DNA of 64,000 bases from Amoeboaphelidium protococcarum X5 (taxonomy: Eukaryota > Fungi > Aphelidiomycota). Both the position numbers and the translations under genes were made by a program. The stretch lies in NCBI GenBank assembly GCA_023515725.1, contig JALDTO010000266.1, positions 2,312,217-2,376,216 of the forward strand, written 5' to 3'. The notes under the pieces were generated by a model. That model saw only the letters and a program-made list of their open reading frames with translations, did not search any database and was not told the DNA's origin. Below, in pieces: positions 10,981 through 56,845 of this stretch (the stretch's first letter is position 1; every line of letters starts with the position of its first letter).

Positions 10981-13900
10981 TCAAATTTATTTAGGCGCGC
11001 ATTTGATAAAGTATTATCCTTTGGATGATGACTATTAGGCCGCAATGGACAGCAAAATACGCGCATTAGAAGTCTTGAGCGGATTTCCACCAATGAATGC
11101 CACGTAGCTCAACTTGGATTCATGCGGTAGGGTATAATTGATTTTGAGTATTTTCAAGACATTCCATGATATCAAATCCAATGCGGATTAATCACTCAAG
11201 GATGTTGAGAGATGGCTGTTCATGGAACCATCGAGATTAATCTTGCTAGTCAACTGAACCAGTCCAGCCCACCAGAACATTTCTCTCAGTTGCAAGTCTT
11301 AATCCGTGGCGAGGGCAAATTTAACACCGTGCCGAATCAAAATTTGTATATCCGTCATTAATTACATCTGTGAGGTATTATTAGTCTAAGACTAAGTTGA
11401 AGCAGCGTAGAGAGAACTCAGCGACCGGCTTCTGCGACTATCATATGCTTCTGGAGTGGAGGATGGCGTGGTCAGTATCAGCCTGATGTTATTCTTCGCA
11501 ATTAACTCTGCCACCATCCAGCTCTCAACTCCGCCATAAATGACCATATTTATACGGCAAGTCTCGCAAAACTCCTTTACGGCGTCCTCTATTAGGGACT
11601 TGATACGAATGACACCTCTTATCAACTCCGCGTTATCTACATGAATTGCCAAAGGGAGATCACCGGTGAGTACTGCAACAAACTTGTTTCTATGAGATTT
11701 GCATCCCTATATTTTCTCTGAGCAGCTTTTAAAATCTTTCAATGCTCTTTGTAGCAAGCGCTCAAAATAATACAACTAACCAGTGAACGATTACAGCAAA
11801 TCACCATTTAGAGACCTGCCCATTGTGAGATGTAAAGCCACTGCTGACTGTATAACGCGGTTATCGACATTCTACTCGTTGAGTGCAATCAGAGAACTCA
11901 CGCCGCGAACCATACTAGATGAACTAGAAGGCGGTACCACTACAGCTTACTCGATTCCAGCCTATTAAGCCATTATCATCAGCTTTGAGTCTACGTGCTC
12001 TAAAAGCTGAGGATCAAATTTCAACTTGTGAAAAGCGGTTTCACTTATCTGCTAAGCAGAGTCTTCCATTAGGGGAGCATTCACGTTGATTACCTGGTCA
12101 AATCCAAATCCACCATCCATAATCAAAGAATCCCAAACTCCTAAACGAGGAGCCACTTACTAAGTGACCAGCTCCTGGCTTATCTCCTTTATGCCAAGTT
12201 CAGTATTTGCAGCAATTGGACCTTATACAAAAATACCATTCTTCATATCTATACTGAGTTCTGTATCATACTGAGAGCAATCCGTCTCTTGTCCAAAACA
12301 GACGATTTAGAGATTATCGATATTTAACTACACCCGTGATAATACACTATCATGCAACTTAAAACCAAGCACTATGGTCAAATTTTCACCACTCATAAAC
12401 TTATCTTACTCAGTGTAGATCAAAGACAAATTATAGAGTCTCATTTAACATTTGCCACCGCATTTATCAGAAAGGCTGTCACAAATAGACTCCATATCCT
12501 ATCTATATACTTTAAAATTATTAATGTGATGGGATCTTATGGAAACATGGTCTACATATTGCTTCCAAGACTCAACCTTATTATGAACAATGCGGCCATC
12601 CACGATTATAAGAGCTGGACGAGTTTACAGATTAAGGATAGGATTAAGAGGCCATAGGACAAGATCCGCATCCATTCCGACTTTAATATCTCCAACGCGG
12701 TCCTAAATACCTAAAGCAATAGCAGGATTTCTGGTTACAGAGTTAAGAACTACACGCCAACTTTTCTCTGAATAATGAAGAGTCTTGAAAGCTTCATAAT
12801 GTAGGAGTTGAGCATTCACAATGGGATGATCACTCTTGATGGCGACATTCAAGCCTGCATCGACCAGCTGATCAAATTAACGTACACTAGCACGGTACGC
12901 CTCGTATTTGTAGTAGCCCCGATCACTAAACATTGCCACTGACAAATCACTGAAATAATGTCCATTCCATTTGATAAAAGGAATCATTTCATGGGCAGAA
13001 GTTGCATGATGGAGTGCAGCAATTGTAAAGTTGAATTCTATACTCAATTGTAACACCATCTCAATATCAACTGCACTATAAACATGGGTATGAACAACAG
13101 CATCACCTAGGAGAATTTGTCTATAGACTGAAAGTGCAACGTCATCAGGATATTGAACATTCAGCAGATTATTCAGATATCTTATGCTACACCATTGTTT
13201 TTGACGTTAAATCAAATTCTAAGCACCCGTAAACTTCTAGCGCAAATAGGAACCAATACCGAGACGTGTTGAATGTTGCTGTGACCGAACATTCTCACCC
13301 ACAGCCATCTTGACCAATCTGCGATTCTTCTTCATATTACTTCCTTGCTAATCAAGCCTATGAAAGTCGCATTTATCTCTTTGATCAGGAATATGATGTT
13401 GATCATCGTGGAAAAGTAAATCTCTAACACTCTAAGCCCAGGGTCGATGCTTGACTATCTACGCGTAACCACCGACAATATTAGCAGAACCAGGCAGGAT
13501 CAAACTAGAGGTGACACCACCGTTTAATATCAGATTCAATTAAACATCTTCAACATGGATAGCATCTCTTACATCACCAATCAATCCTTCATTTTCTTCA
13601 TTAAAATCCTAACTAGTTCTGAAAGTGGGCCATGTATCCACGCCTGCATGAGAGTGCATGTCGATGAAACCAGGCATTAAAGTCATTTCATGGCAGTTTA
13701 CTCTAATAAGATTATCAACCTCGTATAGATTTAATCCTAAATTAGACTCATATATCGACTTAATTACGCCATCTCTAATTATTAAAGAGCAATTTGAGCA
13801 TGAGGTGGAATGCGATTCGATAGACGCGTTATATAATAGCAAGATCTCAGTAGAACGCGTATCAGATCCCAGCCTGGATTAGTCAAATCGACTCTTAGTC

Positions 13901-48961: not shown

Positions 48962-49678
48962 TCAGGGAACAATAGTATGAGATTGATATGGAACTGTAAC
49001 AATCATGATAGCACTTGTTGGAAAATAATCGTTGTGCTAGGTAAATTCAGACGTTTGAATAGCTATCTCGTAGTCCTCAAACCAATGTGGCAATAGAGAC
49101 GCGTAAATACCCATTTGATTCATTAAAAGCGGCTTGAATTGGAGATTATCGGCAGTCAAGGAATATCCAGATTGTCGCAACGGTACACCGTGAATGCTAT
49201 TTAGTTCTGCGACCATAGCGCTAAACTTAGGAGAAATTTCATGAGGTATACGATTTCCGTAATCAATTTGGAACGAGTACGGCAAACCACTCTTTTTCTT
49301 TTTCAAATTTGTAACAGTGAAAGTGAATGTAAACTTTCTCTATTATGTGCCTGTTGCAGCAGCTTACAATTTAAAATGGGCCAAAATTTGCATCCATTGC
49401 TCGGTGCTCATATTAGCAGGCTGGAGCAATTTACCATAGCGATAATAGTTCAAAATAGCGCGTAATCCATCTTGATCTTCCGCCAATTCAATCACACTGT
49501 GTCCGGCCTGCACTTATTGCCGGACAAATTCATGATAAACGCAAGGATGTAAAGCGCTATTAAAAAAGCGAGCTGAATCGATAGCCTCCATTTCATTACC
49601 ATTTTTGAAGTAGATAGTATGAGCAGCTGCTAAATAAGGAAATACCAGACACAAGAAAATTAATACTAATTCAGCCAT
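48962..49678 (-). CDS. Predicted secreted protein with a BTB/POZ (KCTD/T1-like) domain
   Basis: 239 codons. Signal peptide MAELVLIFLCLVFPYLAAA, then VIELAEDQDGLRAILNYYRYGKLLQPANMSTEQWMQILAHFKL. Confidence 0.65.
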
Positions 49679-50048: not shown

Positions 50049-51404
50049 TCAAACCAATCCAGCTTTCCATAACGCCATGTGCATTCGACGCTTATTAAAG
50101 TAACCTCCCTCCTTCTTTCTGAAAGGTGTTCTAATGTTAGTCCCCCAAATACGGGCACGTTCTTGCTGCTGTGTATTACCACTATTGACTTAATCAAACG
50201 TTGCAGTTTCGGCATCATATAAGTTCTATCTATTGTCGACCTGCGGCAAAAGAAGCATCATTTCAGTATCCTCTTCATATTACCTACGCGGATTAGCGCG
50301 CGCTCTGATTTTATCACCCAAAACTTTCATACGAGCCTTGAGTGTCTGTTTCGATGACTAAGGCATCTAAGAAGTTTAATCAATACCCCCATCCGCCCGA
50401 TATTAAGAGCCTTGCGATAACAGTTGATGATTTTCTTGCCCTTAAGATGATTAATGATCTGCCAAAGGAGGAACGGCCTAGTCGGATTATCTTTACGTGT
50501 TGAAAGCATTGTTCGGATCAGGAGGAGCAAGGCGGGAGCCACTGTCATCAGAATTGAGACCACCAGCTTGCTACGGCTAATCAGCATCAGAGAAACCACC
50601 CAAGTCTTAACTCATTAAAGGTGACAATGCACGATGCTTTATACTATCTTCACTTTCATTGGCGTATTCTTCGCGCACCTTACGATCGTACTAAAGACCA
50701 GGCACATCTTATATCCCATTAGCTTCATTCTCATCCAGCCACTTAAGCACAGGTCGTTTGTCAAAAGGCGGTAGTTCTTCCACTTCATATTCATCATCTT
50801 ACTATGTCAGGTGAGCTGGATTCATTCTGCGCGCAAACTGATCAGAAGGCATCATATAGCCCCAATTGTTATCTGCATTTTCGTTAGATATTGGCGGATA
50901 AGCATGCTATAATTGCTCTCCGACAGCCTTGGTTTTTATCTGTCTCAACGGATGATAAGACCCCCAGCCGGCATAATCTACAGGAAGTTCGGCAGTTTTC
51001 TTGTACAAATCGAATATAGAGTCATGAGGACGATCTTCCGGGTCATACTCCAAATCGCTCTCATCGTCGCTAATACCCAATTTAGTGCCAAATGGAATAT
51101 TCGTGAATTTGGCGAATGGACTGATCTACTTCTACTCCGACTGTAGCTCACTATTACCATCGTTTATTGCAGAGGAGCCACTGACACTCATACCATTCTA
51201 TGCCAAGTTACCGGTGGAGGAGGAGGAGTATGTGTCCTAACTAAATTGCTGAGGATAACTATTTCTACCACCAGCGCGATAACCATCTGATGTCCTAGCA
51301 GAATGAGTACCATGACGAGCACCAGTAGTAGCAATCACAGAGTTAATTCCATTGATTAAAGCAAAAACCACCCAAACATAGCGCATCATCATAGTAACCA
51401 TCAT
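50049..51404 (-). CDS. Predicted secreted, largely disordered orphan protein
   Basis: 452 codons. N-terminus MMVTMMMRYVWVVFALINGINSVIA, acidic/Q-rich body, C-terminal ERARIWGTNIRTPFRKKEGGYF. Confidence 0.75.
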
Positions 51405-51721
51405 TTATATCTATTATATTTTCTTTACGCGTTAGCAATATTCGAAAGTTATACTAAAAGGCGAATGTAACGAAAAAGTCGTGGAGGTGGCAGTATCATA
51501 TGAGTTTGAAGGTCAGGTGGCTTGGGTGTTACCGCGAGTTTAAAACTCCGAATTTCAATTGGCTGATTTAAACAAATTTCACATGTCCAATGTACGGCTC
51601 ATAAAGCTGGCACATCCATATCCACTGATTCTTGACGCGTCATTCATGATGGAGAAATAAACTTAAATTAAAATACCGGCACTTATGATTGGTGAATGTA
51701 AAACTGAACTAAACTGCTATT

Positions 51722-52354
51722 TCATTAACCATAACCATTATTATCTTTCTCGGTTCAAAGTACCTAAAATCAGAGACTGGGTTCTCCCCAACCCAATGTA
51801 TAAGGTTTCCCTTTAGAGTAACTGATAGGCGGTGGTTGATCTACTAATTCACCATAAGAATTATATGTTTTATAAAAGTCTTCATCTTCAGCACCAGATG
51901 ACGTCGCCTTCTAGCGGCCTAATTGGCCTTGAGACTTTTCAGCGTCGTAGTCACGCATGAATCCAAAGCCAGTGTTCTAAAAGTGTTCACGCTGAGGATA
52001 AGGTTCGGAATTTGAGTGCAAGCTGCTTGGATTTTGTACTAAATCGTTTTGCTATATCCATCCAACGTAGCCTTTAGCATTATCCTTCTCTAATGGTGGT
52101 CCCTACTATAGACCACTGTGCCAACCCTTGACACCAACCTCTTATTCAAACGGACTTCTGACTTCTTAATATGGCTCTGCTTTCGGCTCAATCTCCTTCA
52201 ACCAGCCTTGATTTTGTTGCGCCTTCTACTGACGCGTATCACCTTCACTCTCCGGGATTGCGCTTAATTGGTGCTTTGCGCTCTTTGTTCTAGGCAGATG
52301 CATAGATGACGCGATGGAGATCAAAGTCAAACTAATTATTATAGCTGGTTTCAT
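51722..52354 (-). CDS. Predicted secreted orphan protein
   Basis: 211 codons. Signal peptide MKPAIIISLTLISIASS. G/Q/Y/W-rich and Cys-free. Confidence 0.72.
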
Positions 52355-52720
52355 TACAAATCTAATCTATTTTATTTTAATGCAATAAGCGTTTTTGTTT
52401 AGCAAAAAGAACAACTTTTAGACATTACAGGCTCTTGAATGAACCCACAAAGTGTAACACGTTGAACATGAGGTCGACTTGTGGCACTTTTTGATTGGCA
52501 CTTTCAGCCATGTGTACCAAAGCAATGTAACAATCATTTCAAGCCCGTCACGTTACACACAAGCTCTGCTAATTTCAAGAAACATGCTACTGTAGTCTAT
52601 GTCGAATCAAGTAAAAGACTTATGTGTGAATATTTTAAAATGGCGAAATCATATATTTAAATTGATTATCATTGACCAACGCTACGGTGCGTAAATTATA
52701 TTCAATTACGTTAAATTCAT

Positions 52721-53641
52721 TCATGCAAATCTTTTAAAACTTGGAGGCTTCTGTTAGTAGTCTTAAGGAAAAGTCAGATCAGCACCTATTACACTGCCAT
52801 ATTCATCACCAGAATCAAAGCTCAAATTCAGCGATTCAGATGACAATTCAGGTTCATCCTAAGGACGAGCTTATCCACCAAATATTCTTGATTTCAAGGC
52901 ACCGAATCTACTACGACCCTCCTTTTTCTGCCCCTAACTGACAATAAAATTCTCAACATCATCAGTCATGTGCGCGTCTTCAGAAATACGAGCAGCGCGT
53001 CTTAATTTCGGTCGTGGCTTAGGCTGCTGTTTGCCTCTGAACATCCTTTACCATTTGCGCCTAAAGTTGACACCAGAGTCTGCGCCTTTGCTCTTACTAG
53101 GCGTATTTGCTGCTAAATGAGACGGATATTCCTCTTCATCTGTGTCGAAACCACCCAAAGATTGACTATCGTGAGAGCCATAACTTTATTTATCACTACC
53201 AAGTCCAAACATTGATGGTCCAGCTTAAGCGTCTCCGTAATCAGGCTATCTTTGGGGAGAAAAGGCATTTAAACGTTGCAGCTAATCGACATGCGCATCC
53301 TGATCATTATAGAAATCTTGTTGCTACAATCCTAATTTATCGAGATTGCCTCTCGCGTCGACATCCACATCCATAGGATCAATACCCTAATCTTGCGTGC
53401 CTAAAGCATCAGTATAACCGTGAACGGTATTACTGCTTTCTATGCTATCAAATTATTTAATACCAGACTGGTCATTACCATTCTCTTGCTAATGCCATGG
53501 TCCTGATTACGGCGATTGGCCTAAGTGCCCTTGGTTGTGGCCAAAGAAATGCCTATCACCGCGGGGTCTTCTGGGGGAGCCAGCCATCGCGAATTGGGCA
53601 GATGTCGCCACGATCAAAGCTACTATAACAGAGTATTTCAT
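52721..53641 (-). CDS. Predicted secreted orphan protein with an NLS-like basic patch
   Basis: 307 codons. Signal peptide MKYSVIVALIVATSAQFAMA, and FRRKWQRMFRGKQQPKPRPKLRRAAR. Confidence 0.75.
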
Positions 53642-54011
53642 GACTATTTCTGCTTTAAATTCTTTGGGTTTGTACTATTCTAATAAGGAAAATTAAGGGG
53701 CAGACTAAAAGAGATCAATTCAAGAGTCTCTGATTCAATTTTGAAAGTCAGAGCCTCGTGAATTAGGTGGCGTGACATTGTCATGAGCTTGAAGTTACAT
53801 TGAAGTCGATAATGCCGCTAGAGTATCTAAAGCTTATCGTGAAAAAGGTGGTGCATCTACTCTAAACATTAAATTAAAACTCAAATAATGGTCTCAAAGA
53901 ATTATCAAAAATATTTCATCACGTCAAAATACTAAAGCAGTATCAGCGGTAATCATATACGATCCCAAGATTCCTCGTCGCATCATATACCATTTAATCA
54001 TCAATGTACGC

Positions 54012-55172
54012 TCAAACACGGCGAAGCAGTGGAGTAGAAGAACTATCATCATGTTCATTGGGTATTTAGCGACTATTACTCTTGATAATATCATATCCCT
54101 TCTAAAAACGAGAATCCAAGTATTTTTGTACACGACCGGGGCCGGCAAAATAGCTCCCACTAACCTTCTTCTTCCACGGCAGTCTAATATCAGTTCCCCA
54201 AACACGCGCCTTTTCACTTTTTAACTAGTCATTATGTTATTCTGCATTGCCAGTATTAGTATTAGTATGCGTAAGTTAAGACGCGTCCGTGTTACCATTG
54301 ATATCATTGAATACATCATTCATCTTTAACAAATCAGATTCTTATTACACGTTTGGATTCAAAGATCTCTCAACCTCCATCAAATCTTAAGTATATTGAT
54401 GGTAATTTTATGGGGGTTTCTATCGACGTTAAGGACGAATGTTTTCCAGCTTGTGGATAATTCGAGCACCAAACTTTGGCCTAGGATTTTGAACCGCATC
54501 ATCATCATCATCAGGGTCAAAGTCCTGATCTGCATAGGAATTCAAATCAACAGACGATAGTGAGGATTGACGCCAATGGCCAGTAAAGCTTAACGGATAG
54601 GAAGGGCCATTATCATCAACCTATAATCCGACATCAGCAGTATCTTTCACCTTCATATTATTAGCGTCACCGTTGATACCATAAACTGCAGATGTATGCT
54701 TTTTCACAGGGCGACGATACTTGTCCAGAAATGGTTTAATCTTATTCTAAGCAAACTCAGGCAAGTATGGACTATCAGCTTTCTTGGAAGAGAATGGTAC
54801 ATGCAGATTAGAACCCCACACACGCGCTCGCTACTTAATGGAAGGATCTTCACCAGGCAGATCTTACTTCTACTTTTACTACTAAAACCATTACTGCTTA
54901 GAGCCACGATGCATACCAGCCCAAAATCTTTTTCTAACAGACGGATCAGCTAACACGTCATCATTAACACCATTTGCAGACTATTTAGAATAGACTTGGG
55001 CATTCAATGCAATACCTTTACCATCCAGTCTGGCATCCTTAAAATCGGCATGATTGCCAGGTTGCTTAAACGCGCGTACCTAGTCACCTAAATTCTTAAA
55101 GGTAAAATCAGCATACACGGCCATGCACAACAATAAGGATAAAATCAGCCATCTAATTTATATAATTCTCAT
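54012..55172 (-). CDS. Predicted secreted orphan protein
   Basis: 387 codons. Signal peptide MRIIQIRWLILSLLLCMAVYA, and near-C-terminal EKARVWGTDIRLPWKKKVSGSYF. Confidence 0.75.
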
Positions 55173-55603: not shown

Positions 55604-56845
55604 ATGCTCAAGTCAATTGTTAATAGAGCAAGTTTATTAAAAGTCGCCCCTAGAAGTGTTCGACACTCGTCTACGTACTCTAATAAGCTCTAGTTCTTAC
55701 CTGATCATCCAAAGATTACGTCGTATAGAGTTCTCGGTGCTGATGGTAACATTCTGAATGGAGCAGATGATCCTAAACTTCCTCAGGAGGAGTGTGTGAA
55801 TATCTACAAGTAAATGGTTCTTTTGAATACTATGGATGTCATTCTGTTTGATGCCCAGCGTCAGGGTCGAATCTCCTTCTACATGACCAATTATGGTGAA
55901 GAGGCGACACACTTTGGGGCTGCCAGTGCTCTGACTAATGATGATGTCGTTTTTGGGCAGTATAGAGAGGCGGGAGTGTTGATGTACAGAGGATTCACGC
56001 TGGACGAGTTTATGAACTAATGCTACTCTAATGACTTAGATTATGGCAAAGGTCGCTAGATGCCAGTTCACTATGGATCGAGAAAGTTGAATTTCTAGAC
56101 TATCAGTAGTCCGCTCGGTACGTAGATTCCTCAGGCAGCTGGTGCCGCATTTGCTCTTAAGCGGGAAGGTAAGTAGAATTGTGTTATATGTTACTTTGGC
56201 GAAGGTGCTGCCAGTGAGGGAGATTTTCATTATGCTCTCAACTTTGCCGCCACTATTGGCACACCTACTCTGTTCTTGTGTAGAAATAATGGCTATGCGA
56301 TATCCACTCCGGCCAAGGAGTAGTACGCTGGTGACGGTATTGCCAGTCGTGGATGGGGATACGGAATCAAGACTATCAGGGTGGACGGGAATGATGTATT
56401 TGCCATGTACAATGTCGTAAAGATGGCTAAAGAGTACGCCGTGACAAATTACAAGCCTGTCTTGATAGAAGCTATGACTTATCGCGTTGGTCATCACTCC
56501 ACCTCAGATGATTCTTCAGCTTACCGTAATAAGAGTGAGGTTGAGACATGGATGAAGTAGGACAATCCCGTGCATAGATTGCGCAAGTACTTGGAGAATC
56601 AGCAGTGGTGGAGCGGTGAACAGGAGGAACAGTGGAAGAAGGAGGCCAGACAGTAGGTGTTGGCAGCATTCAACCGTGCCGAGTAGAGAAAGAAGCCGGA
56701 TGTTAATGAACTCTTTACCGATGTCTTTGACCAACCTACCAAGATTTTGGATGCTCAAAAAGCTGAGATGGAGCGTATTGTTCGCAAGTACCCAGATTAA
56801 TATCCCCTTGATAATCACGCCAATGGTGATCGGTACAAGAAATGA
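55604..56845 (+). CDS. BCKDHA: Branched-chain 2-oxoacid dehydrogenase E1 alpha
   Basis: [74 protein letters not shown]. Confidence 0.97.

Follow-up and report, generated by a model that had tools for sequence, protein, structure and literature searches.

No group is closer to Fungi than the aphelids, which damage algal cultures, yet to our knowledge nothing is known of the molecules they secrete. Short conserved motifs are a recurrent mark of parasite secreted proteins, as in the RxLR and PEXEL motifs, which are found at a fixed short distance past the signal peptide in sets of tens to hundreds of proteins that are otherwise unrelated. Closer to the case considered here are the candidate-effector families, made up of lineage-specific, tandemly arranged, secreted and disordered orphans. 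Short units also occur in the KEPs, which are defined by an N-terminal signal peptide, at least three internal near-identical repeats and KEX2 sites between them (PMC6339444). We focus here on a short motif carried by two genes, gA and gD, of a four-gene cluster in a stretch of 64,000 nucleotides from Amoeboaphelidium protococcarum X5 (contig JALDTO010000266.1, positions 2,312,217 to 2,376,216; hereafter the window), and on how this locus compares with the systems above. Judged from sequence comparison, it is a real linear motif, under selection and private to a small family of orphans that are probably secreted, and its kind is already known, namely that of a candidate-effector family with a motif of its own. 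Like such families, gA and gD have a signal-peptide-like start and no known domain, stand in tandem and are found in one species complex; they also evolve fast, the ratio of nonsynonymous to synonymous divergence (dN/dS) of gA to gD being about ten times that of the neighbouring housekeeping genes, around one short constant block. They differ in that the motif is mostly C-terminal and is duplicated within one member.

The initial annotation had reported a motif common to gA and gD, and both copies are present where it had placed them; gD holds, in addition, an internal copy that the annotation did not mention (Table 1). The module spans 22-24 residues, with the consensus [RK]-[ATS]-R-[IV]-W-G-[TS]-[ND]-[IL]-[RH]-x-P-[FW]-x-x-K-x(2-4)-[GS]-x-Y-[FL], and the C-terminal copy of gD is followed by a further conserved stretch of about 30 amino acids (aa). 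Purifying selection on the amino-acid sequence maintains the motif. In sliding windows, dN over the motif regions is about 0.05 against a dS of 0.5-0.9. In the gA family, for which five sequences were compared (the two locus copies gA and gA2, two copies from strain MP228 and one environmental contig), 21 of the 22 motif columns are invariant against a background of 63% (P=4e-4), and the longest invariant run, RIWGTNIRTPFRKKEGGYF, falls within the motif region. In the gD family (n=4), the C-terminal copy has 20 of its 23 columns invariant against a background of 65% (P=0.016). Furthermore, the motif is the only constrained block common to the two families. Identity at third codon positions between paralogous motif copies ranges from 0.25 to 0.5, and this speaks against both a recent gene conversion and an element acting at the nucleotide level. 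A functional linear motif, the class proposed at the outset, thus appears to be the right one for a short selected block set in a fast-evolving, disorder-predicted and signal-peptide-bearing background. The same annotation had envisaged that the motif might be a mere residue of an old duplication, occurring only in these genes and without excess conservation; it does occur only in these genes, but excess conservation is present.

By its distribution across sequence collections, the motif is a hallmark of these families and not a general export, host-delivery or secretome-wide translocation signal. It is confined to the gA and gD families, where both locus copies, the two strains sequenced and a single environmental contig carry it. 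A degenerate 21-nucleotide pattern for A-R-[IV]-W-G-[ST]-[ND] has six matches in the genome of 23.6 megabases (Mb), where about 0.7 would be expected by chance at uniform composition, and none in the reversed control. Together with longer ones it makes up a set of three DNA patterns of decreasing stringency, all of which return the identical six sites and have no match in the reversed controls. A six-frame profile search of the genome at E<=10 recovers exactly these sites, three of them in the window and three on contig C154, where the locus is present a second time. A genome scan with a hidden Markov model (HMM) had been proposed earlier as a way of revealing an effector-wide signature; since it returned nothing beyond the two gene families and the copies at the second locus, that suggestion is not borne out. 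Outside the genome, 1.84 billion representative proteins were searched with the profile, since a word search misses the full-length kin of short pieces; this gave three matches, namely a gD-family protein, a gA-family protein and a 1242-aa LCCL protein that is discussed below. Word searches with the full-length copies found relatives of gA and gD that are all labelled 'hypothetical protein' and assigned to Amoeboaphelidium protococcarum; their locus tags begin with MIR68_ or MP228_, and the accession ranges in PMC10057920 and PMC10608142 suggest that MIR68 stands for strain X5 and MP228 for strain FD95. None of the searches of the protein collections brought up a protein from another aphelid. 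In the JGI metagenomes the exact motif pattern had one match, on a contig of 69% GC with an unrelated context, which we take to be chance, and a search of PDB sequences with the motif profile gave only noise (E about 1.3). The rarity of the motif rules out a secretome-wide delivery code, and conserved short motifs in the secreted orphans of this genome seem to belong each to its own small tandem family, with no shared delivery code.

Sequence features further indicate that gA and gD probably encode secreted and disordered products that lack cysteine. At both loci, the proteins (eight in all) begin with a hydrophobic segment followed by small residues at a plausible cleavage site, contain no other hydrophobic stretch, lack cysteine in the mature part and fall on the disordered side of a charge-hydropathy (Uversky-type) plot. 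Secretion, as given in the earlier description, is a heuristic prediction drawn from these signal-peptide-like N-termini. In AlphaFold2 (AF2) models, the mean predicted local distance difference test (pLDDT) score is 36 for gD and 37.5 for gA, and about 26-37 over the motifs. As expected of a short linear motif, the block is more conserved than its disordered flanks, and no stable fold is predicted for it from the shallow AF2 alignments. The motif window carries a net charge of +5 to +6 and four aromatic residues per 22 residues, and it ranks first or joint first among the basic-plus-aromatic clusters of gA, gA2 and gD, three of the four proteins scored; in gD2, too, its score is 10. The net charge of the whole gA protein is -14.

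The two proteins had been described as otherwise dissimilar, and no kinship between them is detectable once the motif is masked. With the motif included, gA and gD can be aligned by both BLAST and hhalign (hhalign P=7.5e-7). With the motif columns removed, on the other hand, a profile-profile comparison of the two families by hhalign gives P about 0.1-0.2, and the alignment signal thus comes from the motif. Smith-Waterman scores against shuffled sequences show a weak and inconsistent excess (z 2.1-5.0). Common descent of gA and gD by tandem duplication, with an internal duplication in gD, would nevertheless be the most economical origin.

We favour, with about an even chance of its being correct, the reading that the motif is a short basic-aromatic linear binding element, a family hallmark that comes down from a duplicated ancestral gene. 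In this scheme, gA, gD and both copies within gD would descend from one ancestral gene through tandem and internal duplication, the disordered remainder would have diverged beyond recognition, and the functional module would have been retained. The module would then act as a short linear binding element that tethers gA and gD to a common partner, for which an anionic surface (a membrane or a wall polymer) or a shared protein may be the candidate. The basic-plus-aromatic peak, which in gA stands out in a protein of strongly negative net charge, favours such a binding element. In composition only, and with no sequence relationship, the motif resembles the basic-aromatic clusters of the MARCKS effector-domain type that bind membranes or polyanions. 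The cluster offers a concrete candidate pair with a single conserved handle, of modest practical value for now.

Several observations weigh against this binding-element reading. The internal copy of gD, with 18 of 23 columns invariant, is not significantly above background (P=0.125; n=4), and between orthologues further blocks of both proteins show about the same conservation, so that the motif is not the sole constrained element. The signal peptides were judged by heuristics only, the disorder seen with AF2 derives from alignments of four sequences only, and the common ancestry of gA and gD is drawn solely from their adjacency, orientation, architecture, composition and the motif itself. Finally, each copy of the core has basic residues on either side, an arrangement that proteolytic release of a peptide would explain as well.

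This last point leads to an account in which gA and gD would be prohormone-like or KEP-like precursors, from which kexin/furin-type or other basic-residue proteases free a signalling or toxic peptide of 10-14 residues; this processed-peptide option, named in the initial annotation, is the main rival, though we consider it unlikely. The putative peptide core is [IV]-W-G-x-x-[IL]-x-x-P-[FW], to which the preceding A-R may or may not belong, and around every core there are basic residues, with [RK] before A-R upstream and RKK, KKK or SSKK downstream. The architecture fits as well, with its signal-peptide-like start and a cysteine-free, disordered body, and the genome holds six loci with a proprotein-convertase P domain. 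Language-model features place both proteins nearest to clusters of arthropod prohormones and neuropeptides (gD 0.86, gA 0.79), but scores below 0.9 are leads only, and one third of shuffled proteins reach 0.8. Kex2 sites are KR or RR, with KK weaker or less frequent (PMC6339444), whereas here no KR/RR stands directly at the core boundaries, the flanks being monobasic upstream (ER, QR, EK) and presenting downstream KK, the weaker Kex2 site; in one second-locus copy even the downstream KK is missing (SSKI). There is, moreover, one copy in gA and there are two in gD, against the three or more repeats that define KEPs, conservation continues through the basic cluster into G-x-Y-F, and gD has about 9 dibasic pairs against about 8 predicted from its K+R content of 15%. 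Compared with KEPs and prohormone precursors, then, gA and gD have in common the signal-peptide-like start, the cysteine-free disordered body and the short units bracketed by basic residues; they differ in their length (386-451 aa), in having several other conserved blocks and only one or two units, and in the lack of KR/RR flanks. A more specific version, drawn by analogy and in our estimate improbable, is that the motif core is excised as a secreted peptide of 10-14 residues with W near its N-terminus and P-[FW] at its C-terminus, recalling the alpha-type pheromones of fungi. If true, the sister lineage of Fungi would have in gA and gD two precursors of signalling peptides, and the peptide might serve cell-cell recognition, for example before a fusion that possibly yielded the two diverged locus copies, or might act on the algal host. 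The pheromone-receptor families STE2 and STE3 had no match in the genome, which is uninformative since control genomes gave none either. As to the P-domain loci of kexin/furin type, they include C264:1022514-1025326, C98:1662828-1665630, C207:762460 and C146:249134, and four of the six stand in tandem, two on C264 and two on C98.

An RxLR- or PEXEL-like signal that serves aphelid effectors in general for host translocation or sorting would share with the motif its occurrence as a short conserved element in signal-peptide-bearing orphan proteins of a parasite. The distribution, however, makes this extremely improbable: even at an HMM threshold of E<=10 the genome yields only six instances, in two gene families and their second-locus copies, the representative proteins add none, and the adjacent secreted proteins gB and gC have no copy. 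Unlike RxLR and PEXEL, which sit just past the signal peptide, the motif of these two families is variable in position and mostly C-terminal. It starts at residues 114 and 320 of gD (386 aa) and at residue 415 of gA (451 aa); furthermore, the gA2 protein ends at a TGA 3 residues past the motif, and the gA protein 15 residues past it. This variable position rules out a signal that is read relative to either protein end. A passive remnant of an old duplication, or a similarity kept by gene conversion, would be consistent with the tandem duplication suggested by the adjacency and common orientation of gA and gD, yet we hold it to be very improbable, because no similarity can be detected any longer in the rest of the two proteins whereas 9-11 of the 13 core residues of the motif are retained, because the motif is the longest or near-longest invariant run within the families with dN far below dS, and because third codon positions are near-random between paralogous copies, hence no recent conversion. 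We give practically no credence to a PP1-docking motif of the RVxF type or to a relic of the LCCL domain (core VWGTDIYTDDSSIC). The resemblance of R-[IV]-W to RVxF/W, raised in the initial annotation, is superficial and does not survive a pattern search, for the ELM expression [RK]-x(0,1)-[VIL]-{P}-[FW] matches none of the eight cluster proteins, and R-L-P-W fails on the excluded proline. The LCCL idea comes from the 1242-aa protein, which the profile search picked up through the common VWGTDI; this hexapeptide is all that LCCL and the motif have in common, gA, gD and their pieces have no Pfam match to LCCL (PF03815) even at E<=1 to 10, and the mature gA and gD proteins lack cysteine whereas every LCCL repeat of the matched protein contains it. 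The match is therefore treated as spurious, and the protein was rejected as a true relative: its 50 bits are spread over 10 repeats, or about 5 bits each, and Pfam shows 11 LCCL repeats in it.

Table 1. Cluster genes, neighbouring genes and motif copies in the window, with amino-acid identity and dN/dS between the two locus copies
Feature	Position	Strand	Description	Identity between loci	dN/dS
gA	50052-51404, TGA stop 50049-50051	minus	451 aa, 24 in-frame TAA/TAG	73%	0.36
gB	51773-52354 (from 51770 in the feature list)	minus	194 aa, signal-peptide-like start, without motif copy	60%	0.62
gC	52724-53641 (from 52721 in the feature list)	minus	306 aa, signal-peptide-like start, without motif copy	64%	0.45
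gD	54015-55172, TGA stop 54012-54014	minus	386 aa, 23 in-frame TAA/TAG, two motif copies	72%	0.34
Motif instance 1	50097-50162	minus	gA aa 415-436, ERARIWGTNIRTPFRKKEGGYF, 15 residues from the C-terminus
Motif instance 2	54147-54215	minus	gD aa 320-342, EKARVWGTDIRLPWKKKVSGSYF, 44 residues from the C-terminus
Motif instance 3	54765-54833	minus	gD aa 114-136, QRARVWGSNLHVPFSSKKADSPY, more degenerate internal copy
BTB gene	48965-49678	minus	238-aa BTB protein, hydrophobic N-terminus		0.15
PDH E1-alpha			flanking gene	98%	0.03
BCKDH E1-alpha	55604-56845		flanking gene	98%	0.04
ALG glucosyltransferase	from about 56901

The long reading frames of the locus emerge when TGA is taken as the sole stop and TAA and TAG are read as glutamine, the bacterial code giving short open reading frames (ORFs) only; each cluster gene contains between 11 and 24 in-frame TAA or TAG codons. 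gA to gD form a tandem, co-oriented cluster between the PDH E1-alpha/BTB pair and the BCKDH E1-alpha gene. Proteins identical to gA and gD are present in NCBI-derived collections, where the gA homologues are 450 aa long, and in the annotation of strain MP228 the locus has an identical gene order and encodes proteins of 383, 306, 196 and 450 aa, which agrees with the gene models used here. The genes of these families are intronless as annotated. No Pfam family was found for the stop-free pieces or the full-length database copies of gA and gD, and a search for common DNA elements upstream of the four genes and their second-locus copies gave only A/T-rich words. gB and gC were also considered as homologues of gA and gD, and this was rejected on merely scattered weak scores. 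The BTB gene adjoins gA, and its dN/dS is intermediate between those of the housekeeping genes and of the four orphans. On the other side of the cluster, BCKDH E1-alpha and the ALG glucosyltransferase are separate adjacent genes in the window; the MP228 annotation (GCA_023515745.1, JALECJ010000007.1; 4544-7569 of the excerpt examined) has here a single 893-aa product with E1_dh and Alg6_Alg8, which is probably a merged gene model.

The whole neighbourhood is doubled, the window corresponding to an inverted syntenic block at C154:500001-524000 with the order Piezo, ALG, BCKDH, gD2, gC2, gB2, gA2, BTB, PDH. Between the two locus copies, dS is about 0.26 in PDH and BCKDH and reaches about 0.45 in the cluster genes. 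Such a doubled neighbourhood fits the gene count of A. protococcarum, which at 13,180 is about double the 7,568 of A. occidentale (PMC10608142). gB2 has an in-frame insertion of 35 codons relative to gB, and in-frame length changes, as in gB2 and gA2, are expected of real coding genes. A further variant of gA is found on the environmental contig Ga0498924_0271001 (JGI 3300048586, 1268 nucleotides), whose DNA is 93% identical to gA of the window and 91% identical to the MP228 copy; its protein is 86% identical to gA, with the motif and tail 100% identical. These identities point to a further A. protococcarum-like lineage in sample 3300048586. Between gA2 and the BTB gene, the second locus also carries an insertion that is absent from the window (C154:516042-518285), with ORFs of 444 aa and about 285 aa. 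Pfam returned nothing for its stop-free pieces, and a TnpB/Fanzor identity was set aside, having no Pfam support on the pieces. At least 25 near-identical copies (92-97% identity) of a 78-aa piece from the larger ORF are spread over the genome, and by this sequence evidence the insertion looks like a recently active mobile element.

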